Source: Zygnema circumcarinatum SAG 698-1b
Lineage: Eukaryota > Plantae > Zygnematophyceae
Assembly (NCBI GenBank): GCA_037447605.1
Contig: CM074816.1
Location: 1,516,525-1,580,524, forward strand
Direction: 5' to 3'
DNA length: 64,000 bases
Positions 16,262 to 64,000 of this stretch are shown here, one piece after another. Below the pieces are notes generated by a model, which was not told the DNA's origin, made no database searches, and saw nothing but the letters and a program-made list of their open reading frames with translations. The position numbers and the translations under genes are program-made. Positions within the stretch are counted from its first letter, which is position 1. Each line of letters begins with the position of its first letter.

Positions 16262-16342
<81 letters not shown>

Positions 16343-16375: not shown

Positions 16376-16406
<31 letters not shown>

Positions 16407-16427
16407 GAGAGAGAGAGAGAGAAAGAA

Positions 16428-16470
<43 letters not shown>

Positions 16471-19400: not shown

Positions 19401-19686
19401 TCTCCAATTAAGCAGCGCAGAGGCAGGCTGCCCTCACCCCACACGAAGAGCTGCTTTCCCCATTCAGTGCTCCCGTAGGGCACATCCAAACAGCGCCCAC
19501 TCTTTTTATCTTTAAAGACGTAACCATTCGACTGCGGAACAACGTTCCATATGGCGCCGTTGCCTACAAGCGTATCTGCAGTAAATAGAAAAGACGAAAA
19601 TCAATTGCCTTGGTTTGTACTTACATATATTTCCATGAGTACATCTTGATATCTAGTCTCGGACTCTGTTAAAACTCGTGTATTCA

Positions 19687-19717
<31 letters not shown>

Positions 19718-24372: not shown

Positions 24373-24424
<52 letters not shown>

Positions 24425-36996: not shown

Positions 36997-39900
36997 CTAT
37001 CGAACGAAAGGCTTCTGAGAAATAGGAGGAATGAAGGATTCCCCTGAATTACTCGAGTACGCAAATGGAATTTCGATTGCCGTTAGGGTTTCATCTTCCT
37101 CAGGGAGAGGGAGAGGGAGAGAAGAAGGGCCGCTGCTAAGGCCGGCGAGGGCAGTCTCAAGCTGTCGCGTCACGTCCGCCATGGACGGCCTTGCTTCAGA
37201 GTCATCTCTTGTGCACATCTGCGCGACCTCCACCATCGCTTGCATGGCCGCCATGGAGTAAGCTCCGGTCAGCTTTTCGTCGACAATTTCGCTTATCCGG
37301 CCTTGATTGACAAGAGGGAGTGCCTGTAATAGGAAGGAAATAGAACGCAGACAGATTTTCGAATCATGACATTCTTGAGAAAACAGAATACATCTTGCTT
37401 TTAGTAATCATTAGCAAGGGCATTAATAGCCGATTGGCTATTCTAACTCAAAAGAACTCATTTCAATTTTCTTTGGATCAAGCTAATGGTGATGCATGGC
37501 GAAATCTAGCATCAGAAAAAGAAGCCGAGGACGAAAAAGTAGCAAGAAAAGAAACGGCAAGAAACCAACCGCCAAACCATAGAAATCTTAAATTTTTCAA
37601 ATATGAAATGCCGGCGATAGCTTACCCATCTTTTGACATGAACCACTCTCGCACTCATAGCAAGGTCTTCATCTTTGAATATTGCTCTTTTCCCAGTGAT
37701 GAGCTCCCAAAGCACAACTCCAAAGCTGCAAACCGTGCTCGGTACACTTGTTATCAAAAGGTGCCTTCCAGCAATTTCATAAGTTTCTATCGACAAGTTT
37801 TGCCTGTTTAAGTGTAAAACTGTAATAAGAAAACAATGAGAATCCCAGAAGTATAACTTTTGGCCTCAATTCAATTTAACTTCTGTTCGCTTCGATCTTC
37901 AACCCCCAAAAACACTAAAAATCGCTTCAATCTTCACTGCACAGTATTACAGGTGGAATCTGAGCCGTCCAAACCTCCGAGCCTTGCAGATATTCATACA
38001 GAACACATGTACGGATTAGGGTTTGCAGGTTGGGCTGGACTTGCCTGTACACGTCAGACTTTGTGGATACTTGAGCAGGGGCTCTGATCTGGGGGTCCAA
38101 ATACCTGCCATCAAAGGTAAAGGGTTATTAGGGTTATTATTATTAGTTATCAACTAGTGGTGGGCCAGATAATTACGACAGAAAACTCTAATCGCAGTAT
38201 GATAACTTGGCGTTCAGGGTTTAGAGTTCAGGAATTTGGTCGTGGTTAGGGTTTTGGAAGGAGGGCTATCCCTCAAAGTTCAACAATCCAATCTCTGAAC
38301 CTCCTCTAAAACACGGTTTTGATTTACAATGAAACTAGAAGCATATGGATATGTAAATAAGGTCAGACCTAACCAAAGACGTCAACATTCAGCGCTATTC
38401 TAAGTGTCGTGAAGTTCTAGAAATTTTCAGGGTGTTATTTGTTGATGTAGGTTTTAAAAAGTTTTTTGAATCTCTGGTGAAGTCTTACCCTATTGTTCCC
38501 GCAGGGGCTGTGGCAAATGTAGAAAGGTCAACCTTCTGCGGAAGTTTTCTGATAAGACCAAAGTCTGCCACTTTTGCCTGTAACAAAAGGAAATTGTCCT
38601 TAGACTAGTTCGATTATTTTCACATGAAGAAAAGACTTAGCGATTTGACGTTCGTTCCAATGAGAATGTAAAGCTTTCAAACCAGAAAAAATCTCATGTT
38701 CCCTCATATGTGCAATTCAAAGGGTTCAGCAACTACCTCCATTTCCAGCGTGAGGAGGATGTTTTCGGGCTTTATGTCGCGATGTACGACCGGCTCCTTT
38801 GTAAAATTGTGCAAATAATGGAGGGCTCGAGCAACCCCAATCGCAATGTTAAGACGCTCTTCAAAAGTGAGGAGCGAGGAGCCCGATTCTGCGATACCAT
38901 GAATATAGCAAGAATGAAGCAAGAAGAAAAAAATTGGAAACTATAACATGAATGTAGGATGAATGTAGGATGAATGTAGCATGAAAGAATTACATGGCAT
39001 CAATCTAACACGAGTACAGCATGTTCAAATTTGTCGATAACCAATGTTGAATCTTGAGCAAAACGTATGTTTTAAGGAGGGCAACATCCGGCGACTCAGG
39101 CATTGTGAATAGTGGCTGGGAAAATGCTTAAGTACTGTTTTTAAGTGTTATAACTCGTCTGTACCTTCAAGTTTGTAGGTCTTCGGATGCTTTGATATGC
39201 AGAAAGGCAAAAGACGATAGAAAATTTCTTAAAAATTTGTAATTTGCCTTTTGTATTAATTTTTTTCTAAATTTTTTTTTTTTTTTCGCGAATGCTTCAC
39301 TCACCCGCCTGAGCATCAAGATGTTGTCGGAGAGTGCCGTTTTCCACATATTCGTAAACGAGAATGTGTTCCCCCCCTTCACTGCAGTAGCCCAATAGAG
39401 CCACCAAGTTCTTATGGCTCATGGTTGCGAGAAGTCTCACCTGCAATGGCACAAAAAATCCAAAGTTGACAAGCTACAATCATGAGCACGAAAAGTAGAC
39501 AGTAGGAAGGTATGGGCTAATTCAGCAGTTTTGACTATGACCTAAGGTTGGTTGAAGGTGAAAACATTAAGCTTCAGATCAGAACCTCACCTTGACAACG
39601 CAACAGCCTGCTTTTTTCTAAAACAACTCACCAGATTATGAATTAAGGTTTTAGGGTTTTTAGGGTTTTTAGGGTTTTTAGGGTTTTTAGGGTTTGACCC
39701 TCGACATCAGCCTAATCATTGCTCCGTCTGGCCACTATTTTCGAATCATTTATGTCCATTGATGTGAAGCTGAAAGTACAATGGTCCATCTTGAAAGTAT
39801 AATGAACATTAGAGCAATTCATTTGAAAGATTGATGAGGTGTCCCAAGAGAAATTTTGAGTTTCTGTCGATCAAAGCGGTTGGAGGGGTCTAGGGTTTCA

Positions 39901-42900
39901 GAGTCTACAGAGGAAATTAAATTTATATTCATACCTCTCTTTTAAAATCCGCTATGCTTTCCTCCTTGTCATGTGCTCGTTTCACTGCCCACAAACTTCC
40001 ATCAGGAGAGACCCCCTGATAGACAGTGCCAAAACCCCCTTTTCCAATCGTTTTCTCATTGCTGAAATTATCCGTTGCTTTCATGATATCGGCTAGGGGA
40101 ATGGGCATCGCGAATTTTTGGCGTAGCTCCTCATCTAAAGCATGCATGCCTGCATGCAAAGATGTGCGACATCACCTCAAATTAGCAATGATGACATACG
40201 CCGTTAAGGTCTGATGCTGTTTGAAGTTGACATGTGCGCATACCAAAGCGTATGCATGCATGCATGCATGCATGCATGAAATGTGAGGTAGTTCTATTGT
40301 GGCGCTATTCTTCCTCACTCCCGCAAAGAGAATGAAGAGTGTTTAGGCACTAGAAAATGTGACGTCACCAGCATTGCCAACTGCCATGCGGAAATAAAGT
40401 CACATGTTTTGCTTCTCGACAGAGAGTGCTAATAGGTAGAATTAAAGGCTGACCATCTGCAGGTTGGTAGCCGTTTTTCGACCGCCGTTTACAACAGAAA
40501 AGAAAGCACAAAAGAATCATAACAGCAATTGCGAGTACACCTCCAACGCTTGTTGCCACCGCGATGATAACAGTCGATTCTGTGGAAAATTGAACCCAAC
40601 ACAGCTTGTTATGATCTTTGTGATAGTTTAATAAACGAAAAAAAATGTATGACTGAGAAGACTTTTCGAATGTTAATCCGAGAGAACGATAATGCACTTG
40701 CTTTCACTGGATTTGAACATTTTAAAGTGTAGAACATTAGCTGTTAATAGAATAGGAGCAGTTGCGCTTATTCCAAAATGGAAAGTTGACTCCTTATAAT
40801 CCTTGTAAACATACTCATAATAAAAATGATCTCCTAATCTTCAGGTATGAAAGGGTGAGAGAATAAAGGTAGTTTCCAAAATTTACCGTTGTTTTTTGAG
40901 TGTGGTGGTGGTGGTGGTGGTGGGGGTGATGGCTCTAAAGAAGGGGATGATGGTGTTGAAGGAGAGGGTTCTGCGATTGAGAAAAAACAAGAATTCAATG
41001 AGTGAACTGGAATAATTCAAAAAAGTATCAATGTAGGAAGAAAAGGTCGTTTCATAAATACCATTTCCATTGACGGGAGGTGGTGGTGAGGATGATGGTG
41101 TTAAAGGAGATGGTACTGCAATTGAGAAAGCAAAGAAATTCAATGAGTCTGTATAGAAATGGTATTTGTTCAAAATACAAAGTAACACTCGCAAACAGGC
41201 ATTCTCTCATTTTAGAGTACAGATCCTCATCTTGTAAACATTCATCTTTGGTCATGCAAGTAGTGTTCTCAGCTTACTTCAAAAGAGTGCAGCTTTCTTG
41301 ATCATGGTAAAACATAGGGTTCACTTTACAAAACTTGCGATGGCAAAGCCATCGAACTAGCCAACAACGAGAGAGGAGAAAGAGAGAGAGCGGGAGAGAG
41401 AGAGAGAGATCAAGAAGAAAGGGATGCCGAGAGGAAGCCAAGGCAGCAGTGTGCCAAATGACCATCACTTGAAAAAATCAAAGTCATTAGAATTTGTTCT
41501 AGAGAAATACCTGGCGAAGGAGGCAATGGAGGGGGCGGAGATGGTGGACCTGCACCATGAAGGCACATCGAAACTTGTCACAATAAATCATTCTAAAGAA
41601 ATGGAAATTTCCATTGCAAAAAATTGAAATCCATGTGAGGATAGAACCACAATGTCTATCAAAGTACGGACACGTGCTCTCCGACACGCACTTACTTGAC
41701 ATGTGTCACTAAGCCGAGCAGCTATGAGACACTTTTGAGTTTGAGTGACAAAATATGGCCACTGTGGCCTCATATTACTGTTGTACTATGGACGCGACAG
41801 GTGTGCTCCCACCATCTTGAAACCACAAAAAAGCGTATGTACATAAATATAACTCACCGATTTTAATGTCGCCAGAAATCCTGAAGCACCACTTTCCAGA
41901 AGTGTTCACGTTAGAATCGTTTGTCAAATTCGACAGTTGTTTATAGTTTTCAAACAGATTCAGATCGTCTTCTCCACCATCGGCATATCCCACTTCCCTA
42001 TCTTTGGGAGGGCCCACTGCTCCCTCCATTTCACACAAATGTCCCGGCTGCACTGGCTTAAAAAGGTTGAGAAGTGACTCAATGAAGACATACTTTATAC
42101 GACAACAAATTGAATTCACACTTTTAGGGTAAGTTCTGCTGAGCTCTAAACATTTCAATAACTCACATGCAGAAATCAAAGAAAATGGAACGTTGAAGAT
42201 ATTGAGTAGAAGACGACATCAATATCCAAAGGTGAGACCGCTCACCCCATTGCAATTCCCCCATTGGATAGAGAAAACAAGTGTAAGTCAGCGGTAATAG
42301 GGAATCCCACGTGAGCCACATCTGAAATGTGTTTAACTTATCGGTTGTGCTCCTGCGAGTGAGCACATACATAGGGATGAGGCATTTGTAACCGACATTT
42401 TCATAATACTATCCCTTACTGTAAGCTCAGAGAAATCGATATCTCATAGAAAAGCGTTGAAGAGAGAAAATATCTGAGTCTAGAATTTAGATTGCTAGTT
42501 AAGTCATCAATGGTTAACCGTTAAGCGAGGACACCAATGTTGACTCATGTATTTACATTAGTGACATGATCTAGTGGAACATAGAACCAACGAAAACTGT
42601 ACGAGAACAGGTTCAACTTACTGGCCCTGTGCCACAGCGATGTAGGACACCACTAACCCTCCATCCGGTTTGAAAAGTTTGACGTCTGCATCTGCGGAAA
42701 ATACTTTTTTCACATCTTGCTTCAGAAGTGCGAGGCCTGTGGAGTTATTCGATGCGTTCAGCATTCGGTAGTATACGTATCCTTTGAGTGTTGTGTCTGA
42801 AAGGAAAAGACGAAGGAAAGTGAAATGGTGAGAGTGAAAATGGGACGAAAAGAGGAATGGCCAAGACACAGGATAAAAGAGGAAAGTAAAAGCAAGGATC

Positions 42901-44236
42901 ACTGTAGGCGTTTTCGACATTGTTGAGAGTTTGGTGACACCAGTCTGGATAACTTATATGCTATGACTGAAGAACTAAGTCAAAGGGAGGGAGGGAGGGA
43001 GGGAGAGAGAGAGGGGGCGGCTCCGCCCCTTCCTCTCTGCTTCTTGCAAGGAGGAAGGGAGGGAGGGGGAAGGGAGGGGGGGAAGGAACGTAGATGGAGG
43101 GGGGGGGCCTCCATGCAGCAGATAAGCTGTGCTTGGTCACGGCAACCCTCTATATGCAATTGATAAGTATCTCATTTGTAGTCTTAACTAGGGAAGACCC
43201 GGGATGAGGCTAAAGCGGCTTGTTTGGTTCCTTTGTTCGTGTGTGATCTTATATAGATGAATCCTTTGAGCACGAGAATTTGGCATTCGCACGCCCGCCT
43301 GAAATGACAGCTAAAGGCAGGCAAACCCTTATAGCTGACGACCAGAGCGAACTCCCCAGCCAATGCGAAGCCGGATTCCATTTGTGGGTGCCCTGTTTGA
43401 GGGCGGCAGGAAAAGCGGGCTCTCTCCCTCCCTCCCACCCTCCCTCCCTTCCTCCCTGCCTGCTTGCTTGCCTCCCTCCCAACTCCCAACTCCCTACATC
43501 CCCCCTTGCCTCCTCCCTCCCTGCCTGCCTCCCTGCCTCCCTGACTCCCTCCCTCCCTCCCTGCCTCCTTCCTCCCTGCCTGTTTCCCTGCTTCCTTGAC
43601 CTCCTCCTTCCCTGCCTCCCTCCCTCCCTCCCTCCCACCCTCCCTCCTTCTCATATGGATTGTGGATGCGATAAGCTACTCCCAATCTAATTCAGTGATC
43701 GCAAGGAATAGAGCCGTAACGCGCTCACCCGCATCGTCACCGAACGGAGCGACATACACTTCCGACCTGTCAGAGGAAGGCGAGGGAAGGTATAAGGGAA
43801 AAGAGAGAGAGAGAGAGAGAGAGCGAGAGCTGAGACGGGTAGACCTTTAAGAAGTGAGGTTACAGTGTAGTGAGGTCATTTCTGTGAAAAAAATAGAGAG
43901 AGAGAGAGTAGGGAGAGGAGAAGAATGGGCGAGAGAGAGAATGCACCCGGCACCGGGAAAATTTATTCGTCCATCGTTGCTGATGTTCAAGGAAGTGATT
44001 GTGTAACTGAAGAAGGACATGGGCGCGGGCATCTTCATGAGAGCACTCGTGCAATCGTCGCAGCGCTTTAACTTTGCATCGCCATTTTCAGGACCGTACG
44101 GAACCAAGTCCGCATCTGAGAGGGAGGCCGCAGGCAGCGGAAGAGAGAGAGACGCGAGAGCCAGCAATGGCGGGAGAAGGAAGGGAAGGGACTTGGGCAT
44201 CTCTCTCGCTCTCCTCCGTGACGCGACGGCAGCCAT
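36997..44236 (-). CDS. Receptor-like kinase (RLK/Pelle type): signal peptide / NIDO-like ectodomain / Pro-rich stalk / TM / Ser-Thr kinase; 16 exons, ~716 aa
   Basis: Exons 44236-43947, 43766-43729, 42796-42622, 42352-42246, 42016-41858 (acceptor uncertain), 41549-41511, 41115-41062, 40970-40887, 40579-40454 ([31 protein letters not shown]), 40149-39935 (GKGGFG, WAVKR), 39440-39305, 38888-38737 (HRDIKPEN), 38577-38489 (DFG), 38104-38045, 37725-37626, 37323-36997. Total 2151 nt, all in phase. Confidence 0.9.
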
Positions 44237-45299
44237 GGAGGACTCTCCGGAGCTCCCGGACTCTTCGGCCCCAGCTGTCAACCGCGACCTCCCCGAACCT
44301 GACAACCCCAAACCCACAAAACGCCAAACCCTAAAAACGCCAAACCCTAAAAACGTCAAACCCTAAAAACGCCAAATCCTAAAAACGCCAGACCCTAAAA
44401 ACTCCAAACCCTAAAACCCCAACCCTAAATCCCCTTGACGAAAGGGGCGATCTGCATATGGCGAGAAGGGCGAGGCCCCCAACGGTCGGCGCGGGACCGT
44501 CGTCCGCCGGCGGAGGCGGCAGCACTTGAAACCGTTTTCACTGTACGGCATTGCAGCCGTGAGATTCCCGATCTATGCTCCCAGTTCCGCGTTGCAGTTG
44601 AGAGTGACGTCAAGATGACGGAAACAAAAACCACAGCGCGAGAGATAGGGTCTTTTACTCCTTTTACACAACGGGATTTGGAAAAAAAACTATAGATTTG
44701 CTGACGTTTTGCATACGTCATCAGTTCCAGCTCGAGTGCGTTGGAAGCATTGACGGCCGCGTGACGTCACGCCACGGGAGGGGCGGGACGGGCTGACTGC
44801 AACTGGAACTGGAATTGCGACGAGTTCTATGCTGAACGGTGTTGTTATTGTTGTTGTTGTATGATGTCCAACGACAGCTGTGCATGCAGCCGAGTTGACT
44901 CTCTCCGTTGACTAATGATGAAACTTTAATGCCAATATTACCTCTGACGTATTCGTTGCCATGAGCCAATGGAGACTGGCCACGTCAGCGTAGTGTCCGT
45001 AGATCATTTCCTCTCACTTTACGGCTTGTTTTCATGGCAGGCAAAAGAAGAGACGATAGGATGTGGCATTGACCTCACGATGGCGATGATGCATGCCATC
45101 ACATGTGCATGCAGAACATCAGCATCACAGGGAACCACGAGGAACATTGGGCGAAGAAAAGGTATTCTATTGGGTAAGAAAAGGTAGACGAAATAGCCGG
45201 AGAGTTGCAGAGAGGAGAGGCGAGAGAGTGGACGACGACAGAAAGGCTGAGGAGAAGTTGGAAGAAGGACGAGCGAGTGAAGAGGAAAAGGAGGGAGTG

Positions 45300-47199: not shown

Positions 47200-49078
47200 T
47201 TAAGTGCATGCGCTTGTCGTAGGAACACAAATCATCTTCATTTTTTTCAAGGCTGACGCAGTGCATGGGAAGCCATTGAGTTTTTTAAAACTCTCCTTCT
47301 TGTTGAAGCACGTCTTACGATTGGCGCATTTATCTCCTGCCTTCAACGTGTACGTGTTCCCAGTACAGTCCGCACTGGCGCCAAGATTCGCAGCTTCCAG
47401 ACACACCTGCAGGATGCAGGCCGTACATAGTTCTGACGTTAAGACAAAAAAAAAAATGAGTTAATTCTTCAATTGGCGAGACCGCCGCATACCCAATTCG
47501 ACCGGAAGAGCTAACCACATCGTCATTCACTCCGACCAAGTCGAACAAACGATTTAAAACCAACTCGACAAGAAATTCAAACTATGATTGTAACGACTTT
47601 GACACGTGCATGACCTTGTAATATTTGATTGCGCGTTCTTTGTCCCTTTCTTACATGCTGCCCAATCGAAGCGCTGCTGCTCGTGGAGAGCAGCAGCTTG
47701 CCGCAGTACACCCCGGGATTGAGCGTGTAAAACTTTTTGATGTCTCCAGCGAGTTCGTTCCTTATGATGGAGAAGCACGACTCCTCGGGCTGCACAAAGT
47801 ACGGCTTCGTGCATGGCCCCGGATAGACAAGGTCTCCCCTCTGAATGCAGACCTGCAAGAGAATTCGACACTCATACTTCGCTACTATTAACGTCGTTTG
47901 ATGATGTGACACCGTGCCTCGGACTACGAACAATTAAAGACGAAAAGTGTTAGTAGGTAGATATACTTCGCGTTGCTCCCAGAATTTGATCAGATTCTTT
48001 AAGTAGATTTGTCTTTTTTTTTGTGACCGTTGGATTGTAGCATGCGAGATTACGGATCTTTGGCCATTGGGTATGCAACGTGCAAAGAGGCAGTGGTATT
48101 AAGCAAATGGACGTTAAAATTTGAAGTTATTTGAGCTCACAAGCTCTAATATGCTTCGCGCTTTTTTGCAAATGAGGGCTCTTATCTGATCAGTAGAATT
48201 CACTGAACTGAACATGTTAAAATTGAGCTTTACTCCTTCCACGTTCAAAGGTGGTACCTGCTGGAAAGGTCGAAGCTGCGAGCAGCTTAAGTCCGGATTG
48301 GGAGATCCGGGCCCATATATCGATGTAACGTTGAAATATGCTGCAATTGCCTCACACGTGTCACCCTGAAGGAAGCAAAATTTGAGTTGGTAACTGTCAG
48401 CTGCACCTTCGATCATCAGTGACACATTAAAGTTGGAGGGAGAAAATCAAGAAGAGATCTTCAAGAGAAAAAGTGGAGGCGATAGTACGGAGGCTGACCT
48501 CATTGACAGCGTACACCACAGAGCAGTTTCCGTAATTGGTGACATTCACCACCGTACCTCCCGGCAAGGGCAATAGGCAGTTCAGCCTCTGAAAAACGCA
48601 CAAGAGATTGTGAAAAAAGGCACCAAATATGAGCATAATAAGAGCGTAATAGACGAAGAAAGAGGTTGTAGAAACACCAGCCCCTACCCTTTCCTGGATG
48701 TATATTCAAGGAAAGTGAGAGAGATGTACGATAAGTTGTTGTGAGAGGATGTGCGCTCTCTCACTGACCTTATTTTGGGCTAAGAAAACGTCGTTCTTGA
48801 TGCCATACATGATAAATATGTCGTAGCAACTCATGTTGGCGCCGGCTGGCACAGTAAAGTACTGCAATCCTGTAGCTATTGCGGCTGAAGGCGATACCCA
48901 AACTAATCAGGGATTTGAGTTAAAATGGCCTCAGCAACGATTATTTCCTTTCCTAGAAAAAAAGGAGAAGTAAAAAGTGATAGTACATTCGTGTGATTGT
49001 TTAGGTAGTAGTGTCGTCAGAATTTGGGTCATCTTCCATGTTCTTCAAGTCAAGAAGGAATTTGCGTTCGATCGCATC

Positions 49079-49115
<37 letters not shown>

Positions 49116-49125
49116 NNNNNNNNNN

Positions 49126-49163
<38 letters not shown>

Positions 49164-52100
49164 AAATTATGAAATTGAAGTCATGACCTTGCTTAAGAAA
49201 TGTTTTATCTGTTCTAGAAAGAACGAAGATCTGACCTGGCACGCAAGTGAGGATGCCATCCGGAGAGTCGGCGGCATATCCCAGCGGGCAGGCGCAGGCG
49301 TACGTGCCAGGTGTCGCCACCGCATTGAGACACGTCCCCACGCCGCAGGGGTTGCTTGCAGCGAAGGTGCAAGGGGAGACTGTTCCACAGGAGACACTCA
49401 TACGGTTGTTTACTAAGTACTTCAAATCGCATGTAGCAACAATTAAGCGCTTTCCTAAACGTTTGATTAAGAGCTTGCATTGGAAATAGGAAGGAAATCA
49501 GAGGTGAAAAAGCCTTTACACTATACGTTATGGGTCTGGGTAGTTACATGCATACGCGGGTCAGAAATGCACGGAGTGGTACACCATTTGATGAAAAAGA
49601 TTTTCGAAGGTTAGTTCATTGAACAAACATGATCGGACATGAACATCTACTTAATGGAATTGACCACCCACGTGGTGCACATGTTTGCGAGTTGTCGCTG
49701 TTGGTCACTGCCACGAATCCCTCCGAGCAGCGACATTAGTTCGTAGAACCATTCACAGTACACACACCATTTCCGCACGGGTTCATTGTACCTGGTCCAT
49801 TTGTGGTCATAAGAACTGTACTGGCATAGTTTCTCGTAAAGCATGGATCATAGTCTGCATCCACCAGACACGAGAGTACGAACAAGATCAATATTTTTCC
49901 CTTGCTAGAAGCTGAGAATGGAGCGGTGCAATGATCGCGAAACTCCAAAAAAGAAAAGTGAACATGCTTTCATTCTAATGAGCTAGAGAAATATCGCCAT
50001 CCTCTCGACTAACTGACCGTTTAGCTATGTGATTTCATCCGGTGGTTCATTAAGATTGATGGGACAATCACAAGGGCTGTCTTAGCCTTGCGCATTGCAA
50101 GCATGTTGCGTGTACCATCAGCTCATAGTTCACGCTAAGTTAAGCTAAGCGAGTAAGCTAGTTCGAGCCACGATAGTAAGCTACAACGTCAACTGCCACG
50201 GTGATGAAAGTTGAAGATCGTGAATGAAATCGACAACTCCCTCTCACCTGCAGACTTCACTACAGGCATAAGTGCCGGAAGGGTGTTGATTCCGCATGTC
50301 CCCAAACCGGCGGATATTTTGAGGCGCATGTAGCCCTGCTCGCCCCAGTTTTGGCCCCACGAGTTGCGGATGATCCAAAAGGGTGGATCCGCACTCAAGT
50401 CGTATCCGACCACCACCACGCTGTGATCCACTCCGTTAGAAAAGCAGTCTTCATCGTCAAACACCCCCTGCAACAAAAGCAATTTTGCTGTAAAAATGAG
50501 TGTTGTCAGATGAATATCGGAAAAGTAGTTAGTAGGTAATGTCACTGATGCCAACAATTAAGAGTCAATCACGTGAGCGTCTTGAGAAAATAGAAGCAAG
50601 GTCGTTTCCCAAATGGCAGAGGATCAAAATGAAACAAAGAATCGATGAGTTTCCAGCAGAGCCATGAGAAGATCTATATTGTTATTACTCCGTTGTAGTT
50701 GATGAAGTTGGAACTGCTCGCTTCAATATTCACAATAGCCGGTTGCTGCTGCAGAATGAGCAGTAAGCCCAGCCAGCCGTTGAAGGCCACTTGCTCAAAC
50801 GATGTAATTTTAAACCTGTTATCACCCTGCAAGTTACAACCCCATTATAAGTCAAATAAATCTTTATGAAGTTGTTTTTCCTAATTGTGCACAAAGTCCT
50901 GCCATGAAGGAGAAAGCAAACTCAAGGAATCCAAGCACCTTCAGTTTGTGCTCTTCTTTTCCTTCACGCAGACTGGTATACAAAAAAGGATGAGCTGAAA
51001 TTGTTACCAAGCAAAAACTTCTTTGCTGCTGTGCAGGTCACTCTTTCGCCTATCTCCTTGGCCAGCTCTCATTTCAGCAGAGGTTTTTTGTACCTTTCCG
51101 CAGCTCGGTTGCCCCGTGAAATTCGATGCTAAAGTGAGGGCGTTGTTTGCGGCATAGTCAAGCGCCTCCTGGGGCCATCCCCCGGACGCGCAGGTCTTGC
51201 CGGTGGAGGAGCAGCTCAGGAGCTGCTGCTCTGCCAACTGCGGGGTCGGAAGATTTCCACCGTTGACGATGAAAATTGCGCTTTCAATGGCAGATATAGA
51301 AGAAAATACCCAACAAGAGCCTGCAAGAAAACAGCAACATGAATCAGCCTCTGACATGCATTTGAGTTCTCCATGTCCTAAGTCAGCATCCTTCTCTAAA
51401 ATGCCTCAAACGGTGAAAACCAGTATGACCAAATGTCGCAGCCTAACTACAGATAAGTAAGAAAATCTTTATAGAAAATTTCTGTCAAGGTTGTTGAGGA
51501 CCAAGTGCATGCAATGTAGAATGCTTTTGAGATACATGACCTCCTGGATCGTATTTGCAAAATGGCAATACAGCCATAATGACTCAGGTCCTTCAAATGC
51601 TCAAAGAAGCGCTGAGCACTCACTGCAGCTTCCTTGATCCTTGACGCCTTGGACGGCTCCTTCCACCGTCCAATTCCAGGCGATGGCCACCTGCCACGAA
51701 GACTTGCCATTTCTCTGCCTCAAGTATCCCGTTGTCGCATATCGAAAATAGCGGTTCAGTTTAGCATATGATGTGATGGGGAGGCTCGTGTTTAAGCCGA
51801 AACCTCGTCCCCCTACATGTCGACAGGAGCAATACAAAATTTCAAAGAGGATTTCTGCTGCTTAACCTGGGTAATCTACGACTTCGCAGACCTTTTTTGC
51901 AAAAGAGACATCTTAGATGCTCATTTTGGAAGTGTTTCTCAAAAATTTAACCTTTACTGGGAATCAAGCGAGGACATTCTGAATCACAATATAACCCACA
52001 ACGAAATCGAAAGCATAGTCGAGACCTCACCAAAAACACAAGTGTTCGTATCTGAGGTGATGTTGTACCCAATATCGCAAGTGCAGGTCGGCTGGCTACC

Positions 52101-55100
52101 ATTATAAGAGCAGTACCCGTTCCCACCACACGCGCCCTGCGGCTGTCTTGCATTGCAGAAGTTGTTGCAGACATCGTCATCTCTTTGGCTTTGTTCGGTG
52201 CAGTTCGCATCTAAATCAGCAAAACAGTTGTTGTCAAATCCAACGCACGGGTTCCGTGTCTTGCCATTCACAGTAATCGAAAGTTCACCCGAAAAGTAAT
52301 TGTTGTCGAAGCTCAAGGCCACGTCTTCAAGTAGTCCGAAGTCAAACACGATTGGCCCGATGAGAAGATTCTTTGCTAAAGACCTGCAGGAAAATTAACA
52401 TAAACAGTTGCTCAAATCCCAATAGTGTACCCACTTCCTGAAGTCTTATCGCCCGTCTTCAATTCTAGTGATTGTTTTGTAACAGTGAAAGGCCGCAGGT
52501 AATGCTGAATAGAAAAATGCCAAGTGCAATAGTCCTACTTTCTACATTTTCCTTGTAACTCGTCATCCTGGCCTACTAGTTTTCAGCTATCTCGACTTTC
52601 ATTCAGTTCAATGAATTCATTGTTGAGCTAGCTCACAGGCTTCGAATGGATAACAGGCCTCCAAAAGTTGTTGGAATGGTTCCAGTAAATCGATTATTTG
52701 ACAAGCGCCTGCCACATCCGCCGCGGAGAATGTCACAACATAAAAATAAGGATTCGAATTTGGACATTGTAAATTGCATCGAAACTTGGGGGCACCGACA
52801 TCAAGACAAGAAAGTAGCAAGTATTCGAGATTTTCTCATGGTCGTGTAAATGCTCAGAATCCCGTTCCAGCCGTGGATTAGATTATTGCGATAATGACAC
52901 AGCTTCAAACCAAATGACTCACAGTTCTTTGAGACCCCTCAGTGTGCCGATCGAAGCAGGAATTGGGCCGCTCAGCTGATTGCTTCCGAAGTTTCTGTGG
53001 ACCCAGCATGTGCTATTAAGGAGTAAAAAATACGAACAATCAATCACCTGAGGTTTCAAAAGTGGTGCACCCCATATGTTTAGAAAACGTGATTAAATGC
53101 TTCATGAATCAACTTCTATTTTTCGAAAATTGATTGATTCCAGAACCTCTCAAGTCATTCTCAGACCTCTCCCATTAGGGTCACCAGTTTTCCGTTCATT
53201 CCATCATAGGACCGATGAACGAGTTTGCTTGGTCGTTTTCAATTGCGATCAGTTGTGCTGAGATTATTTGCACCCAGTTGTTGTTGCAAAGCTGCTGAAC
53301 TGTCGTTTTATTACATAAAGTAATAACTTAATAGTAGCAAAGTAATTTAGTGAAGGCCAGAAGGACACTCACAGTATCGAAAGAGACTTTAGATTTTCGA
53401 AGGAAGTGGGAATCTCCCCAGAAAGCCGATTTAGTGACAACGATCTGCAAGAAAGCAGCCACAAGTCAACGTCAATCCGATCTGTTTCAGTGGATATGGT
53501 TGATACTCCTTCGTTCAAGCAGTGACTCATATCATATCCGCAGGATTGAAATTCCATTCGATCAATCAGTTGGAGGTTGCAAGCTTTTCTTAACACACAC
53601 AGCAGAAACGTGGGCACTCATCTTGGTCGGGCAGTCAATTCAAAACTTACATCTCCGTAAGGGAGGTGAGGTTGCTGAAGGAAGAGGGAATAACGCCCGT
53701 CAACTCATTATTTGACAAAGTCCTGCCATAGCGAATGTCACCCATACTAAAAACAAATGAATCACAAAGAAAATAATTCTGTCGAAGCAAGCACAGGATA
53801 AAAGCGACGGATTTTGAGAAATGAAAACGAAATAGGCTCAATGGTAGCCAGACGTCCAATTCTTCCTTTGTCGCAAACTATATCACACTTTTTCCATTTC
53901 AAAACAAAGACCAATGGTGAATATCACACACAATTTTTTCAAATTCTGAAGTTGGCCAAGTGTGTTTGGAATGACGCCGCTGAGCTTGTTGTTCGACAAA
54001 TCCCTGCGACATTGCACACAACGTGCATCTGGGCATAAGGTAATGATATTTGCCTAGTTAGAAGGTACAAATATGGAAAAAAAAAATCGTAGAGTACTTT
54101 TCATATGACAGATTTAGGTCACAGAGTCGAAATTTGACTATGTCTTGGGTACCCAGCCCAGATTGAGTGTCACGAAATTCAGTATAGCCCATTTTGCATG
54201 CAATGCATGGAGGCATAGTCCAGGCTATAATTAACATGTCAATGTTAAATCAATCATGTGTCAGTCTTAGGCTCAATCAAAATTAGTCACATCGTTGGCA
54301 GATACGAGCATGAATGGAAGGTGCGACTGCGAATGTAGGCATGCACGGTCAACTTGATCGTCTTGGAAACAAAATTCCTTTAAAATTCTTACAAAATCCA
54401 AGAGAACTGATAAAATCCTACACATAATTTGCTGGTATATTCACATGCCAAACCAGTTTCCGCACCGAACTCGCGACCCATGCCTTTCTTGTGGACATGA
54501 GGAAGTTCGTGTGGCTTGCTCGACGGTACGTCCACAACAAAGATACTTATGAGTGGGCAGCATGCACCCAAGTATACGGTGCTTTCCAAGTACACATTTT
54601 GCAGACATGCACGAAATTATTCGCTTGCCAATGCCAAAGTTGGCAGTCGAAGATCGACAAGGGGAAGTGGTGCTCACAATTCCTCCAAAGCTGCGAGGCT
54701 GCCGATGGAGGGTGAGATCGTGCCGTTCAGCAGACTGACCAGATCACCTCCGGGCAACAAGCTGTCAAAACCGACACACGCACTTCAGTTGCCTGTCTTG
54801 GAAACGTCTGTTTCTCTCAACGATAGTGTCTTCACTTCAGACACAATAGGTGATATTCTTCGTCAGGCATTAGTTCTCAGTTATATTCCTGTGGTTTTCT
54901 CTTCTTGAAAGTGCAGAGCTTTTTCTGTTTGACTCTATTCCCCTCATGACCTCCACACATACTCATTACCAAGGAGAGTCTTGAAATAAGAAGAATTTTC
55001 GTTCTCTGATAAGTCACTACAAGTTTTACAGCAGGGTGTAAACCTTGAATGATTCTGAGTCAATATTTTCTTCTTTTGGATGAAAGTTCGTCTCTTTTAG

Positions 55101-55346
55101 GCGCAGGCAATCCAATTTTGTACTCCATTTTCTTTAAAATAAACAAAATAAACATTGTCTTCATATTTAAAAATCACGTTAGAAGAATGACCAGGTCACA
55201 AGGAAGGATCTCTCACAGTTTGTTGACTCTTTTTGGTGAAGTTGTGGTGCATCCTACACCGTCCCAGTTGCATACAGAGCTCTCTAGCTTCCAGTTACTC
55301 AGGACGTCGTTTGCGATCGCCCTCTTGAACTCCAAAAGAGCAACAA
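47200..55346 (-). CDS. LRRNT / LRR (~7-8) / Cys-rich EGF-like / papain C1A / EGF x2 / LysM x4 coding region, with in-frame TAA at 49738-49736 and no own start exon found
   Basis: 55346-55217 (VALLEFK..LSNW..CNWDGVGC), 54761-54678, 72-nt phase-2 LRR exons at 54003, 53722, 53444, 52994 and 52708 (LSNNKLSGVIP etc.), 52383-52031, 51812-51624, 51320-51094 (KDQGSCSSCWVF), 50826-50689, 50467-50248 (DHSVVVVGY, WIIRNSWG), 49854-49672, 49379-49236, 48902-48769, 48588-48499, 48365-48258, 47852-47655, 47406-47200. Further LRR exons may have been missed. Confidence 0.85.
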
Positions 55347-55707
55347 CTGTACCAATTGGCAGAAGACAGCCATGGAGAGAGTCTTAAAATAGCTTGAAGC
55401 CACACAGTAAGCTCTAGGCATCGAAAGTGCAGGCTCAAGCAGCAGTTCTGAACGAGACCGATGACTGACTGAACTCTATTCCCTCTTGGCATTGAACACT
55501 GCATTTTGTATGGTGGATTTGATGTCCTAATGATGCTCCTAGCGCTCAGCCAGCAAACCTTTCTCACATAATGATCAACAGAGGTGGGGAGGACTGGTTT
55601 TCCTCAAAGGTAGTAGTTTTTCGATGATGACTAATGTTTGTGCAACCCAAAAAACGACAGAGATTAAAAAACAAAGGAAAACAACAATCTTTACAACTTT
55701 CCATTAC

Positions 55708-58700
55708 CGTCCGTAGAAAGTGGCGGCGGCGGCGGCCTTGGGGGAGGTCGAGGTGGCGGTGATCGCGGAGGAGGCGGAGATAGAGGCGGCCTTAGAGAAG
55801 GCGGAGGTGGCGGGGGTGATGGCTCTAAAGAAGGGGAGGTTACTGCAATCGTGAAAGCACAAGAATTCAATGAGTGAACGAAAACACTTGAATAAGTATC
55901 AATGTGGGATAATAAGGTAGTTTTCATAAATACCATTGTTGTTGAGGGGAGGTAGTGGTAGGGACGATGGTAAACGAAAAAGAAAACAAATGTCTGACTG
56001 AACATTTTCTTATTTTGGAGTACAGATCCTCATCTTGTAAACATTACTATGAGAAGTCCCTTTTTTCTTTGGATGTGCAAGAAGTGCTCTCACTTACTTC
56101 ACACAGAGTGCAGCTTTCTTGATCATGGTAAAACATAGGGTTCACTTTCCAAAACTTGCGATGGCAAAGCCATCGAACTAGGCAACAACGAGAGAGGAGA
56201 AAGAGAGAGCGCCGAAGAGAGAGAGATCAAGAAGAAAGTGATGCAGAGAGGGAGCCACGGAAGCAGTGTGCCGACAATGTGTTCTTGAGGTATACCTGGC
56301 GATGGAGGCGATGGCGGCGGTGGAGGAGATGGCGGCGGTGGAGGAGATGGCGGCGGTGGAGGAGATGGCGGCGGTGGAGGAGATGGCGGCGGTGGAGGAG
56401 ATGGCGGCGGTGGAGGAGATGGCGGCGGTGGAGGCGATGACGGCGGTGGAGGCGATGGCGGCGGTGGAGGCGATGGCGGCGGTGGAGGAGATGGCGGCGG
56501 TGGAGGAGATGGCGGCGGTGGAGGAGATGGCGGCGGTGGAGGCGATGGCGGCGGTGGAGGCGATGGCGGCGGTGGAGGCGATGGCGGCGGTGGAGGAGAT
56601 GGCGGCGGTGGAGGAGATGGCGGCGGTGGAGGCGATGGCGGCGGTGGAGGCGAAGGAGGCAATGGAGGGGGCGGAGATGGTGGACCTGCACCATGAAGGC
56701 ACATCGAAACTTGTCACAATAAATCATTCTAAAGAAATGGCAATTTCCATTGCAAAAAATTGAAATCCATGTGAGGATAGAACCATAATGTCCATCGAAG
56801 TATGGACAGGGTGCTCTCCGACACGCGTTTACTTGGCATGTGTCACTAAGCCGAGCGGCTACGAGACAGTTTTGTGTTTTAGTGACAAAACACTGTATGG
56901 CCATTGTGGCCTCATATTACAGTTGTACTATGGACGCCACAGGTGTGCTCCCACAATCTTGAAACAGAAAAAAAGAGTATGTACATAAATATAACTCACC
57001 GATTTTAATGTCGCCAGAAATCCTGAAGCACCACTTTCCAGAAGTGTTCACATTTGAATCGTTAGTCAAATTCGACAGTTGTTTATAGTTGTCAAACAGA
57101 TTCAGATAGTTGTTTCCATCGGCATATCCCGCTTCCCTATCATTGGGAATGCCCACTACTCCCTCCATTTCACACAAATGTCCCGGCTGCAGTGGCTTAA
57201 AGGGTTGAGAAGTGCCCCAATGAAGACATACTTTATACGACAACAATTTGAATTCACACTTTTAGGGTAAGTTCTGCTGAGCTCTAAAAAATTTAATATC
57301 TCACATGCAAAAAACAAAGAAAACGGAACGTTGAAGATATTAAGTAGATGGCGGCATCAATATCCAAAGGTGAGACCGCTCACCCCATTGCAATTTCCCC
57401 ATAGGATAAAGAAAACAAGTGTAAGTCAGCGGTAATAGGGAATCCCACGCGAGCCACACCTGAAATGTGTTTAACTTATTGGTTGTGCTCCTGCGAAGTG
57501 AGCACATACATAGGGATGAGGCATTTGCAACTGACATTTTCATAATTGATGCTCGATAACCTGTGGGTGACATTACTATCCCTTACTGTAAGCTCAGAGA
57601 AATCGATATCTCATAGACAAGCGCAGACGAGTGAAAATATCTGAGTCTCGAATTTAGACTGCTTGTCAAGTCATCACAATGTATGCCGTTATGGTTTACC
57701 GTTAAGCGAGGACACCAATGTTGACTCATATATTCACATCAGTGACATGATCTAGTGGAACATAGACCCAACGAAAACTGTACGAGAACAGTTTCAACTT
57801 ACTGGCTCTGTGGCACTCCGATGTAGGACACCACTAACCCTCCATCCGGTTTGAAAAGTTTGGCGTCTGCATCTGCGGGATATACGTTTTTCACATCTTG
57901 CTTGAGAAGTGCGAGGTCTGTCGGGTTATTCGATGCGTTCAGCATTCGGTAGTATACGTATCCTTTGAGTGTTGTGTCTGAAAGGAAAAGACGAAGGAAA
58001 GTGAAATGGTGAGAGTGAAAATGGGACGAAAAGAGGAATGGCCAAGACACAGGATATAAGACGAAAGTAAACCATGGTTCACTGTAGGCGTTTTCGACAT
58101 TGTTGAGAGTTTGGTGACATCAGTCTGGATAACTTATGCTATGAGTAAAGAACTAAGTCAAAAGGGAGGCAGGGAGGGAGGGAGAGAGAGAGGGGGCGGC
58201 TCCACCCCTTCCTCTTTGCTTCTTGGAAGGAGGGAGGGAGGGAGGGGGAGGGAGGGGGGGAAGGAACGTAGATGGAGGGGGGGGGCTCCATGCAGTAGAT
58301 AAGCTGTGCTTGGTCACGGCAACCATACATATGCAGACCCGGGATGAAGCTTGTTTGGTTTCTTTGTTCGTGTGTAACCTAAAAAGGTGAATTCATTGAG
58401 CACGAGAATTCGGCATTCGCTCGCCCGCCTGAAATGACAGCTAAAGGCAGGCAACCCTTGTGGCTGAAGACCAGAGCGAACTCCCCAGCCAATGCGAAGC
58501 CAGATTCCATCTGTGGGTGCCCTGTTTGAAGGCGGCAGGAAAAGCGGGCTCTCTCCCTCCCTCCCACCCTCCCTCATTCCCTCCCTCCCTTCCTCCCTGC
58601 CTGCTTGCTTGCATCCCTCCCAACTCCCTGCCTCCCTACATCCCCCCCTGCCTCCTCCCTCCCTGGCTGCCTCTCTGCCTCCCTGCCTCCCTGACTCCCT

Positions 58701-59366
58701 CCCTGCCTCCTTCCTCCCTGCCGGTTTCCCTGCTTCCCCGACCTCCTCCTTCCCTGCCTCCCTCCCTCCCTCCCTCCCACCCCCCCTCCTTCTCATATGG
58801 ATTGTAAATGCGATCAGCTACTCTCAATCTAATTCGGTGATCGCAAGGAATAGAGCCGTAACGCGCTCACCCACATCGTCACCGAACGGAGCGACATACA
58901 CGCCCGACCTGTCAGAGGAAGACGAGGGAGGGTACAAGGGAAAAGAGAGAGAGTTAGAGAGAGGGCTGAAACGGGTAGACCTTTTAGAAGTGTGGTTGCA
59001 GCGGAGTGAGGTCATTGCTGCGAAAAAATAGAGAGAGGGAGAGTAGGGAGAGGAGAAGAAGAGAGAGAGCATGCACCCGGCACCGGGAAAAATTATTTTT
59101 CCATTGTTGTCAATTTTCAGGGAAGTGATTGTGTGACTGAAGAAGGACATGGGCACGGGCATCGTCATGAGAGCACTCGTGCAATCGTCGCAGCGCTTTA
59201 ACTTTGCATCGCCATTTTGAGGACCGTACGGAACCAAGTCCGCATCTGAGAGGGAGGCCGCAGGCAGCGGAAGAGAGAGACACGCGAGAGCCAGCAATGG
59301 CGGGAGAAGGAAGGGAAGGGACTCGGGCATCTCTCTCGCTCTCCTCCGTGACGCGACGCCAGCCAT
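55708..59366 (-). CDS. Duplicated RLK ectodomain: signal peptide / NIDO-like / extensin-like (SPPPPP)n; exons 59366-59077, 58908-58871, 57977-57803, 57490-57384, 57155-57000, 56685-56296, 55842-55708; no TM or kinase
   Basis: Exon-by-exon paralog of 44236-40887 with matching exon lengths for the first four exons and an intact frame. It ends at a phase-1 donor, or by read-through at TAA 55691. Confidence 0.85.
56300..56650 (-). repeat. Coding 18-bp tandem repeat (~19 x Ser-Pro5)
   Basis: GATGGCGGCGGTGGAGG(A/C) units on the + strand. Confidence 0.95.
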
Positions 59367-60129
59367 GGAGGACTCTCCGGAGCTCCCGGACTCGTCGGAC
59401 GCAGCTGTCAGCCGCGACCTCCAAAAACCTTAAAACCCCCAAACCTGTAAAGTCAACGAAAGGGGCGATCTGACCGTCAGCCGGCGGGGGCGGTGGCAGT
59501 TAAAACCGTTGCCACTGTACGGCATTGTGGCTCCGTTCTATGCTCCCAGTACCGTGGTCCAGTGAAAGTGACGTCATGGAGACGGGACGTGAGCGTGGCC
59601 GTACGGACAGGTCATCGCGCAACGACAGCATGGAAGGGTTGCGGGATGTGACGTGGCATGACACGATTTTGACAGTTGACCTATTGGTTTGTACATTTTC
59701 TTTAATCGACCCGATTTGTTGGTATACGGTATCCCCCCTATTAATATTTTCCACCCTAGTACTTGAATTAAGCAAGAAATTCGCCCTGATTTTGAGGAAA
59801 CCACTATTTGTACGGAAAGTCTGTGTTGTTAACCTTACCTGTCCTATTTTTCAATACAAAATCTGTTAATCGAAACGGGTTTCGAGCATGGGTCACGCTA
59901 TGCCGCTGTACGGTAATTACAGAAAGTATCTCCAACCCGTACGGTATATATTTGGCACCAATAGGAGTTCGTGTAGTTAAATGTACGGCACCAATAGGAG
60001 CCCGCCAGGAGGCCATGGGCCTCTGTACAGTACAGAGAGACACGGACTACCTTATATTTTCAAATTCCAAGATTTTCGCCCAATATTTGCCGAAACCATG
60101 GCGAAAATATTAGGGGAGGTTAAGGTAGT

Positions 60130-60400
60130 TTCTTCCAATTCACTCGAGTTTCTTCAATCGACCCGATTTGGTTCGTACAGTTTCTTTCAATTCACCCGAT
60201 TGGTTCGTATAGTTTCTTCTGATTCATCCGATTGTTCGTACACTTTCTTCAATCGACTCGGTTGGTTCGTTCAGTTTCTTCCAATTCACCCGATTGGTTA
60301 CAGTTTCTTGCAATTCACTCGATTGGTTTTTACAGTTTTTTCATTCGACCCGATTGGTTGGTACAGTTTCTTCCAATGCACCCAATTAGTTCGTACTGAT
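60130..60400. repeat. Degenerate ~30-bp tandem repeat (~9 copies)
   Basis: Consensus approximately CAGTTTCTTCCAATTCACCCGATTGGTTCGTA. Confidence 0.85.
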
Positions 60401-61469
60401 TTCTATGCTGTACGATGTTTTTGTTACGTTCCGTTCAACGGCGGCTGTGCATGCAGCGGAGTTGACTCTCTCTGTTAACTGATGATGAGGCTTCAATGTA
60501 GAATGATGTTTGATTGAACTCACGATGGCAAGGCCATCAAATGTACATGGATAAAATCGACATAGGGAACCAAAAGAAGCGGTCACAATGGACATAAGGA
60601 CAAAGAGAAAGCCTCGAAACGGAAACCAACTTCTAGGCTCAACAACACGGCACTAGAAGCAGCCACGCAGGTCGCCAATGTGGGGCGCAGTACGCGCAGA
60701 ACCTTTAATGCCAAAATTGCCTCTGACCTTCGATGCCATGAGCCAATCGAAACTGGCCACGTCAACGTCGATCTCGCTCGTTGCGGCTTGTTTTCATGAC
60801 AGGCGAAAGAAGAGAAGGGAGGATGTGGCATTGGTCTCACGTTGGCGATGATGCATCATGCCATCACAAATGCCCCATGATGATGTTGTTCATGTTTTGT
60901 TTATACATGAACAACATCATCATGGGGAACCATGAGGAACAATAGGACCAAAAGGCAAAAGTGCTCTCGATGGAGGCAGCGAAGCAGAAGTGGGGGAGGG
61001 AGCAACTTCTGATAGTTAGTAAAAATAAAACTGAAGTTGAAGAAATTTTATCTTTAATTCTGACAACTAATCCTAATAACTATATCTTTTCGTACAATCA
61101 AAATTCAGAATTTAGGCAACAATAGCTCTGGGAGATGATGCTCTCCGACATGGGACAAGACCACGACACGTGGCAGAAATGGTTGAGGATCGTAATGTTT
61201 GTCCTTTAGGGACGGGATCGGATACGCACATGGAAAATCTCGAGAATGATGAACATACTGTATATATTTTGTCGTTTATAGGTAGGTGTACTACTTGACT
61301 TTCAAACCGGGCACTACCTGACGGCCACAGTCCGCCTATCCGGCGGCAGGCACCGACATTTTGGGAACGCCGAATCTTCAGGATTTCCTAGAACGACAAA
61401 GGATAAGATACGGTCAACCAACGTAAAGATCCACTAGTGCACGTGGCGGTCAATAATGCAATCAAAATA

Positions 61470-63748: not shown

Positions 63749-64000
63749 TCAAAATATTACAAATTTATTGATTTGCAGCCTCTAAGCCAATTAAGATCTC
63801 TTGTAACCACGTGGCGGTCAACAATTCGTCAGAAAGAATCCACACGATTCTAAAGCAATCCTAAAAGTATTGGAAAATCTCGAGATTCTACAGATTGAGT
63901 TGATCCTCTTACCTCCGTACCGTAACAGCTTCTGAACTAACATTAACCCTGGCGGGACCGGCGGGTTGATCCTGGCACCTGGACCTCACCCGCCGTCCGT

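Follow-up and report, generated by a model that had tools for sequence, protein, structure and literature searches.

The minus strand of an intron-rich, 64,000-nt stretch of the Zygnema circumcarinatum SAG 698-1b genome (contig CM074816.1, positions 1,516,525 to 1,580,524; hereafter the window) carries, at 59366–47200, a gene that joins a NIDO and proline-rich head copied from a receptor-like kinase (RLK) to a member of a family of leucine-rich repeat (LRR)–EGF–papain–EGF–LysM proteases. We regard it as a young fusion gene that arose by exon shuffling between two neighbours on the same strand, and put the probability of this reading at roughly 70%. The original prediction for this locus, made from the DNA letters alone, had been that a receptor ectodomain was converted into the head of a protease; this was largely supported, as the junction is present in RNA and both parental lineages can be identified.

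A spliced junction between receptor-derived and protease exons

The gene model, rebuilt from splice sites, reading frames and RNA joints, comprises 26 GT-AG exons (Table 1) running from the ATG at 59366 to a TAA at 47202–47200 and adding up to 4041 nt, or 1346 codons, in a single frame whose sole internal stop is a TAA at 49738–49736 (codon 1038). An earlier count of 4056 nt was 15 nt larger; the accompanying statement that the exons form one frame apart from the TAA at 49736 stands. Phase-1 introns lie at every module border, namely NIDO–rod, rod–rod, rod–LRRNT, EGF–papain, papain–EGF, EGF–EGF and EGF–LysM.

At the seam between the two parts, exon A7 ends in a phase-1 donor (GAC G/GTAATG, last exon base 55708) and the LRRNT exon B1 starts at a phase-1 acceptor (TACAG/TT GTT GCT, first exon base 55346), with an intron of 361 nt between them and a joined reading of ..LSTD-V-VALLEFK, all as originally predicted. 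The predicted junction peptide is ..PPLSTDVVALLEFK. Two further claims proved accurate: an in-frame stop precedes the LRRNT exon (TAA 55386–55384), and the 361-nt gap offers no usable start, all its ATGs being out of frame or soon followed by stops. If the donor at 55708 were left unspliced, the upstream frame would terminate at TAA 55693–55691. The LRRNT exon itself lacks a start codon, and the first in-frame ATG lies in the late papain domain, at about residue 970.

RNA evidence came from contigs (100–400 nt long) of four public runs from the same organism—X1 from a 2019 study and X2 to X4 from a 2024 study—aligned to 50050–56000. The check for junction reads across 55708–55346, proposed along with the original prediction, came out positive: a joint 55346/55708 with GT..AG ends on the minus strand was found in four of four runs, covering both studies, at depths of 68.8 (X2), 13.8 (X3), 36.3 (X4) and 3.9 (X1). 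The predicted splice thus keeps the frame in RNA. Variant forms of the junction were seen at 55348/55716, with six letters between, and at 55344/55708, with two letters between. Set against the depth of the LRRNT exon, junction contigs accounted for 147.7 vs. 155.3 in X4, 16.2 vs. 16.2 in X1 and 52.2 vs. 92.6 in X3, i.e. ~95–100% in X4 and X1 and 56% in X3, and a bin within the fusion intron (55423–55621) had zero depth in all four runs. From these shares and the empty gap, we conclude that the junction represents the normal usage of the LRRNT exon, not rare read-through. Among the RNA contigs of the four runs, no donor other than 55708 was listed as joining acceptor 55346.

These figures bear on a simpler arrangement, namely a truncated NIDO/Pro-rich gene ending at TAA 55691, followed by an LRR-protease gene driven by a separate promoter, with occasional conjoined read-through accounting for the junction. 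Tandem genes on the same strand often do yield rare conjoined transcripts, and A7 is covered somewhat more deeply than the LRRNT exon (92–257 in X2–X4, 17 in X1), so that some A7 transcripts may not reach the LRR exons. However, the stop just before the LRRNT exon, the late position of the first in-frame ATG, the silent gap, the high junction shares and the single donor together make two separate genes highly improbable. We also considered an own start for the LRR gene through unspliced in-frame reading from the A6/A7 intron (MFSQTF..); it was rejected, the RNA depth of that intron being close to zero.

Over the aligned region, the RNA profile is exon-shaped, with each intron of the LRR–EGF–papain part seen either as a GT..AG joint or as a loose end matching the next exon. 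Depth in 55821–56000 equals the expectation from 22 exonic bases of A7 alone and, therefore, coverage ends at the A7 acceptor. For the NIDO region (57000–59366), we sampled 31-mers, a fraction of 0.26 of which is exonic and at most 0.06 common to the parent gene. The RNA-like runs of the 2024 study contain 0.42–0.45 of these words and DNA runs 0.82–0.94. As the share in RNA is well above what cross-matching to the parent could contribute, the RNA libraries contain sequence specific to the NIDO region of this copy, some of it intronic, which fits transcription of the head. Exon 1 and the junction are probably continuous in one molecule, the duplicated promoter may be used, and the full 1346-residue product is a predicted one.

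Several observations made in passing concern the same transcripts. Five consecutive LRRs (52637–54003, minus strand) occupy one 72-nt exon each, and the borders of these exons are in phase 2. In a single X4 contig with a depth of 53, position 51093 is joined to 50466 on the minus strand, skipping the 138-nt exon B11 in frame; the resulting form, lacking 46 residues between the catalytic Cys and His, is possibly an inactive isoform. A single X2 joint (51244–51648, depth 186) has GT..GC ends on the plus strand, outside the minus-strand gene model, and may be an artefact, antisense or an aberrant splice. Lastly, three RNA runs from 2017 with the same species label (X6–X8) contain none of the sampled words from either searched stretch, so that this label may cover more than one species or strain.

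Table 1. Exons of the fusion gene and associated features (window coordinates)
Feature	Position	Strand	Remarks
Exon A1	59077..59366	-	ATG 59366, signal peptide, NIDO start; phase-2 donor; 94.5% identical to RLK paralogue exon 1
Exon A2, NIDO, 38 nt	58871..58908	-	splice sites conserved in RLK copy
Exon A3, NIDO	57803..57977	-	
Exon A4, NIDO core	57384..57490	-	Pfam NIDO 25.2 bits (profile 97-127)
Exon A5, NIDO C-terminal part	57000..57158	-	Pfam NIDO 23.5 bits (profile 143-185); weak acceptor AGGGAG/TA, deduced boundary
Exon A6, (SPPPPP)n rod, phase 1-1	56296..56685	-	18-nt unit x 20.6 copies
Exon A7, second Pro-rich exon	55708..55842	-	phase-1 donor ACGGACG/GTAATG; only first ~45 nt align to RLK
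Fusion intron, 361 nt	55347..55707	-	joins RLK-derived part to protease gene; joint 55346/55708 in X1-X4
Exon B1, LRRNT, phase-1 acceptor	55217..55346	-	Pfam LRRNT_2 40.2 bits; RNA joints
Exon B2, LRR 1	54678..54761	-	joints 54761/55217 and 54002/54677
Exon B3, LRR, 72 nt	53932..54003	-	RNA joint and loose end
Exon B4, LRR, 72 nt	53651..53722	-	loose end at 53931 matches exon start; frame
Exon B5, LRR, 72 nt	53373..53444	-	loose end at 52994 matches exon end; frame
Exon B6, LRR, 72 nt	52923..52994	-	joint 52707/52922
Exon B7, LRR, 72 nt	52637..52708	-	joints 52707/52922 and 52381/52635
Exon B8, last LRRs, Cys-rich cap and EGF-like module, phase-1 donor	52031..52383	-	RNA joints; weak EGF-type Pfam matches; homologues
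Exon B9, linker and start of mature papain with Gln of ..KDQGSC	51624..51812	-	joints 51811/52030 and 51319/51623
Exon B10, papain with catalytic Cys (SSCWVFS)	51094..51320	-	Peptidase_C1 45.6 bits; RNA joints
Exon B11, papain	50689..50826	-	joints 50825/51093, 50466/50688 and 50466/51093
Exon B12, papain with His (VDHSV) and Asn (IRNSWG)	50248..50467	-	Peptidase_C1 65.1 bits; top RNA depth
Exon C1, first EGF after protease, interrupted by TAA	49672..49854	-	loose end at 50248 matches exon start, one base changed
Exon C2, second EGF	49236..49379	-	Pfam EGF 27.2 bits
Exon C3, LysM 1 first half	48769..48884	-	colinear with P0010
Exon C4, LysM 1 end / LysM 2 start	48499..48588	-	colinear with P0010
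Exon C5, LysM 2	48258..48365	-	Pfam LysM 15.7 bits, below cut-off; colinear with P0010
Exon C6, LysM 3	47655..47852	-	aligns to P0010 1014-1065, overlapping P0010 Pfam LysM 1031-1067
Exon C7, LysM 4 and terminal TAA (47202-47200)	47200..47406	-	
Assembly gap	49116-49125	.	within intron C2 (49379-49236) / C3 (48884-48769), in the middle of a long T-run (minus strand)
Sister gene of the head: NIDO / short Pro-rich / transmembrane / kinase RLK	37665..44314	-	transmembrane exon ~40578-40455, kinase exons 40150-37665

Probable origin of the head in a neighbouring receptor kinase gene

From 59445 to ~55700, the head is an 89–95% identical partial duplicate of a neighbouring RLK gene (37665–44314). 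This neighbour, PERK-like in layout, encodes a signal peptide, a NIDO domain, three short Pro-rich exons, a transmembrane exon and kinase exons; it is apparently intact, and in the RNA runs the ends of its spliced transcripts are visible at 55806/55837 as loose ends of 255 letters. The best-matching part (56649–59445 to 41513–44314, same strand) is 89% identical over 2.9 kb, with weaker similarity extending to ~55800 on one side and 60868 on the other. Common to both genes are the signal peptide, the NIDO exons, the first Pro-rich exons, every splice site and part of the 5′ flank, of which ~60 nt are well conserved and a further stretch, to 1.4 kb upstream, more weakly so. The two copies lie 15 kb apart and have diverged by ~6% at synonymous sites (dS 0.064).

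Exon identity between the NIDO copies (92–95%) is not above intron identity. Indels are distributed differently: introns carry 18 in 1598 nt and exons a single, in-frame one in 769 nt, where ~8.7 would be expected (probability of no frameshift ~7e-4). This deficit indicates that the reading frame of the head was protected while its amino acids changed freely.

The two genes part ways at the 3′ end of the Pro-rich region. In the parent RLK, a phase-1 donor (AACAACG/GTAAAT) splices to the transmembrane exon and thence to the kinase, whereas the corresponding donor in the copy leads to the LRRNT exon; likewise, the rod exon measures 39 nt in the parent vs. 390 nt in the copy, where an 18-nt unit coding for SPPPPP is repeated 20.6 times with a 96% match. 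Alignable similarity to the RLK stops inside A7 near 55800, the rest of that exon sharing no 31-mers with the window, and the match around the A7 donor (ACGGTAA..GGAAA) is short and near the general donor consensus, so that homology there may or may not hold. The breakpoint thus lies between ~55800 and 55690.

It is conceivable, if unlikely, that the break falls within the Pro-rich exon itself near 55800, in which case the last ~90 nt of A7 and the donor would stem from a Pro-rich first exon of the protease gene and only signal peptide, rod and NIDO domain would be borrowed. The end of RLK similarity near 55800, the absence of shared words in the remainder of A7 and the ambiguous donor match would all agree with this. 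On the other side, the phase and position of the donor equal those of the parent donor before the transmembrane exon, and the nearest full-length relative of the protease part (P0010, see below) has no Pro-rich stretch between signal peptide and LRRNT.

Our preferred reading is a fusion that took the RLK-type donor along. In it, the RLK segment that starts in the 5′ flank, runs through the exons for signal peptide, NIDO and Pro-rich region and ends at the phase-1 donor was duplicated directly upstream of an LRR-EGF-papain-EGF2-LysM4 gene, the recipient being without its own start codon or signal-peptide exon. Splicing of the donor at 55708 to the phase-1 LRRNT acceptor at 55346 keeps the frame, and the Pro-rich exon has expanded in the copy into an (SPPPPP)x20 rod. 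The simplest history is a local duplication that placed the 5′ half of the kinase gene, or all of it, upstream of the protease gene, accompanied or followed by loss of everything between the Pro-rich exon and the first intron of the protease gene. No kinase remnants were found downstream of the copy, the only kinase exons in the window belonging to the parent RLK.

A lost signal-peptide exon farther upstream was also considered and rejected: 59500–64000 holds only repeats and a FAR1/AFT-like, transposase-type open reading frame (ORF). This ORF lies on the minus strand, encodes a DNA-binding domain of the AFT/FAR1 type (47.5 and 27.6 bits at 62284–62700), is part of a repeated element found at 61467–63748 and 26356–27519, in pieces 82–97% identical, and adjoins a long low-complexity array coding for Pro/Ser/Leu or Gly/Arg/Glu; the element is probably transposase-derived.

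The internal stop codon and transcript variants

Several observations weigh against our interpretation. Upstream of 56000, the joining of A7 to A6 and on to A1 was deduced from the drop in coverage at the A7 acceptor and from the word shares, which could include unspliced RNA or DNA carry-over. The acceptor of A5 is weak and its boundary putative. The dN/dS of the NIDO copies, 1.08, would agree equally with diversifying selection and with relaxed constraint, and copying may have gone from RLK to chimera or the other way round. With its TAA at codon 1038, this copy may be a pseudogene or a target of nonsense-mediated decay (NMD). Lastly, many exonic RNA contigs differ from the window at 2–3 sites per ~110 nt, a divergence of 2–3% in several exons, so that the abundant transcripts may derive from near-identical copies or alleles and not from this copy.

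As to A5, the acceptor AGGGAG/TA is the only phase-compatible one open in both copies when aligned with the RLK; the alternative ATAAAG/TA, open in this copy, was rejected as it runs into a TGA in the parent. Atlas look-alikes of the NIDO exons gave weak NIDO support and no information on the direction of duplication.

The TAA lies in the first EGF after the protease (..CTVNGSTN*CRCSEGF..), where it would remove the second half of that EGF, the second EGF and all LysM domains. The aligned residue is Tyr in the paralogue within the window and Thr or Glu in Mesotaenium, and one base change from a Tyr or Glu codon suffices to produce a TAA. Since 308 codons and six introns are intact downstream of it, the stop must have arisen very recently by mutation, vary between strains or be an error of the assembly.

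At some exonic sites, e.g. 50283, 50737 and 51771, every RNA contig departs from the window, and the LRRNT exon is represented by two variant types with no pure reference type, whereas low-depth unspliced or intronic contigs match the window with 0 differences over >2 kb. Conversely, exonic contigs identical to the window exist at good depth (X4 52030–52145, depth 290; X3 51215–51320, depth 36), and at several sites in B10 the window letter carries much or most of the X2 depth. Likely, the organism has at least two near-identical copies or alleles that share the junction. Rod length, too, varies among copies or alleles: at 55766–55810 (minus strand), X2 and X3 contigs show 36 extra letters with a 45-nt step back inside A7, and X1 has a variant end at 55766.

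Taken together, the lone nonsense codon in an otherwise intact 1346-codon frame, the exonic differences and the exact intronic contigs would suit a recently dead member of a small fusion family of identical architecture, with a real TAA, its mRNA cleared by NMD and the transcripts stemming from one or more near-identical, functional copies or alleles at other sites. The fusion architecture would then be genuine but would not describe the product of this locus. NMD would indeed explain a low mRNA level of this copy, provided that its TAA is real. We consider this explanation tenable but somewhat doubtful: contigs drop rare variants, so that a missing reference type proves nothing, window-identical contigs do occur, and the intact sequence beyond the TAA speaks for a very young change or an assembly error.

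A second irregularity of the assembly, the gap between C2 and C3, leaves only the intron length uncertain. As a single BLASTP segment (see below) crosses the border of EGF 2 and LysM 1 unbroken, no exon was lost there, and the frame agrees on both sides, independent of the gap.

Predicted product, protease family and known systems

Pfam scans were run on exon-sized pieces (cut-offs: Peptidase_C1 20.7, NIDO 25, LysM 20.9 and EGF 21.5 bits). Both Peptidase_C1 matches are above the cut-off, and the spliced translation has intact motifs for catalytic Gln, Cys, His and Asn (KDQGSC, SSCWVFS, VDHSVVVVGY and IIRNSWG). The exon preceding the mature papain domain gave no Pfam match to an I29 prodomain, whose position is taken by a linker of ~45 residues (..YLNRYFR..) conserved with P0010 and P0013. 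The NIDO matches of A4 and A5 are marginal per piece and consistent in profile order, and the nearest named Atlas clusters of the first exon carry NIDO. An LRRNT_2 cap is followed by one 28-residue and five 24-residue single-repeat exons plus the repeats in B8, as in plant-type LRR ectodomains (LxxLxLxxNxLsGxIP). The EGF match of C2 is above the cut-off, C1 has the six-Cys pattern but holds the TAA, and B8 gave weak EGF matches. For LysM, the best exon piece stays below the cut-off; C6 aligns to a stretch scored as LysM in P0010 (69.6 bits, whole P0010). Residues 257–431, a rod of 175 residues, are 74% proline in Ser-Pro repeats (SPPPPP) and contain 0 Tyr, hence no cross-link motifs such as YxY or VYK, which makes it a Pro-rich rod and not a classical cross-linking extensin. 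The only hydrophobic stretch is the signal peptide (residues 16–39), and no membrane span is predicted.

Read as modules, the product would consist of a NIDO head, a hydroxyproline-type rod of ~175 residues, ~8 LRRs, an EGF, the papain domain, two EGFs and four Cys-flanked LysM domains. The signal peptide would export it as a secreted, probably wall-associated protein; the Ser-Pro rod, which probably undergoes hydroxylation and glycosylation like those of other wall proteins from algae and plants, may hold or space the protein in the wall. NIDO, LRR and LysM would offer three binding surfaces and the papain domain would cut; without a classical prodomain, latency may rest on the conserved linker or the LRR-EGF head. 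Judged by domain content, a ligand- or glycan-targeted extracellular protease at the cell wall is the likely role, and both microbe sensing or attack and remodelling of the alga's own wall would fit the modules; secretion, wall anchoring and function are thus predictions from the sequence.

The protease part belongs to an existing family. With X at the stop, residues 470–1340 of the spliced protein align in a single BLASTP segment to residues 237–1138 of ME000166S01720 (P0010) of Mesotaenium endlicherianum (~36% identity over 870 residues), and Mesotaenium P0022 and P0027 align just as colinearly. P0010, the closest full-length LRR form, has the same LRRNT-LRR-EGF-Peptidase_C1-EGF2-LysM4 order, linker and catalytic residues and, unlike the Zygnema gene, an ordinary signal peptide directly before LRRNT. 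A region-restricted search with the papain–LysM part of P0022 returned 149 relatives of the core at E ≤1e-20. With few exceptions these come from unnamed transcriptomes, Closterium species and Mesotaenium endlicherianum, and every one is annotated as hypothetical or unnamed. Their heads are absent or consist of LRR, legume lectin or EF-hand domains; among the 120 listed of the 149, none has a NIDO head or a long SPPPPP rod. A word search with full-length P0010 was dominated by LRR receptor kinases and thus little informative. With the LRR-cap/EGF exon as query, a HMMER search against 1.84 billion representatives led to the same Mesotaenium/Closterium family and found no protein above 49% identity, and our literature search found neither a paper on algal NIDO receptor kinases or LysM-papain proteins nor a description of this family. 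As the LRR-protease core occurs in Mesotaenium and Closterium, it represents an existing, uncharacterised family, to which the NIDO and rod head is the new element.

The window contains a second papain-EGF-LysM gene (13360–24563, minus strand); over the exons for papain and EGF, the two are 35–45% identical. Matches of its head to ricin-B lectin are weak (19.8–21.7 bits, below the cut-off), and long GGGA/GGRE-type arrays as well as an assembly gap are found in its introns.

That new proteins can arise when exon shuffling fuses genes is textbook knowledge, and cases in which donor, recipient, breakpoint and spliced product can be seen together are, to our knowledge, rare, especially outside animals. 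Here, donor, recipient, breakpoint and an RNA-supported junction are all visible; the domain combination is new, the process known. The locus also brings to light a large zygnematophyte family of cysteine proteases that end in LysM domains and vary in their recognition heads; Zygnematophyceae are the sister lineage of land plants. Recognition in plant immunity and symbiosis relies mainly on two modules, LRR and LysM, and a lineage in which these are coupled directly to a protease is informative about the organisation of extracellular sensing before land plants. More speculatively—and we think this rather improbable—zygnematophytes might swap heads on a constant papain-EGF-LysM chassis, recombining it through phase-1 introns with LRR, legume lectin, ricin-B or EF-hand heads and, in the present gene, with a copied receptor-kinase ectodomain on a long rod; in this last case, the protease would bear a decoy or duplicate of the sensing domain of a surface receptor. 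If so, a ligand of the NIDO receptor would also recruit a wall-anchored protease, and the algae most closely related to land plants would have a system that parallels, outside the cell, the integrated-decoy immune receptors.

Known proteins share parts of this layout. Land-plant LRX (LRR-extensin) proteins and algal matrix proteins with hydroxyproline-rich glycoprotein rods are secreted wall proteins joining a hydroxyproline-type Ser-Pro(n) rod to a ligand-binding LRR part; in the Zygnema gene, the order is reversed (rod before LRR), Tyr motifs are absent and NIDO, protease, EGF and LysM are added. Plant cysteine proteases of the granulin type (RD21/XBCP3) carry a Cys-rich C-terminal extension after the C1 peptidase; here, EGF and LysM stand in granulin's place, no I29 prodomain was detected and a large receptor-like head is found at the N-terminus. 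A parallel in mode of origin is metazoan-style exon shuffling, in which extracellular modules are bounded by phase-1 introns. As there, all module borders are of phase 1, and EGF as well as NIDO—usually regarded as an animal matrix domain—are among the modules; unlike there, the organism is a streptophyte alga, and the donor and recipient genes still lie side by side.

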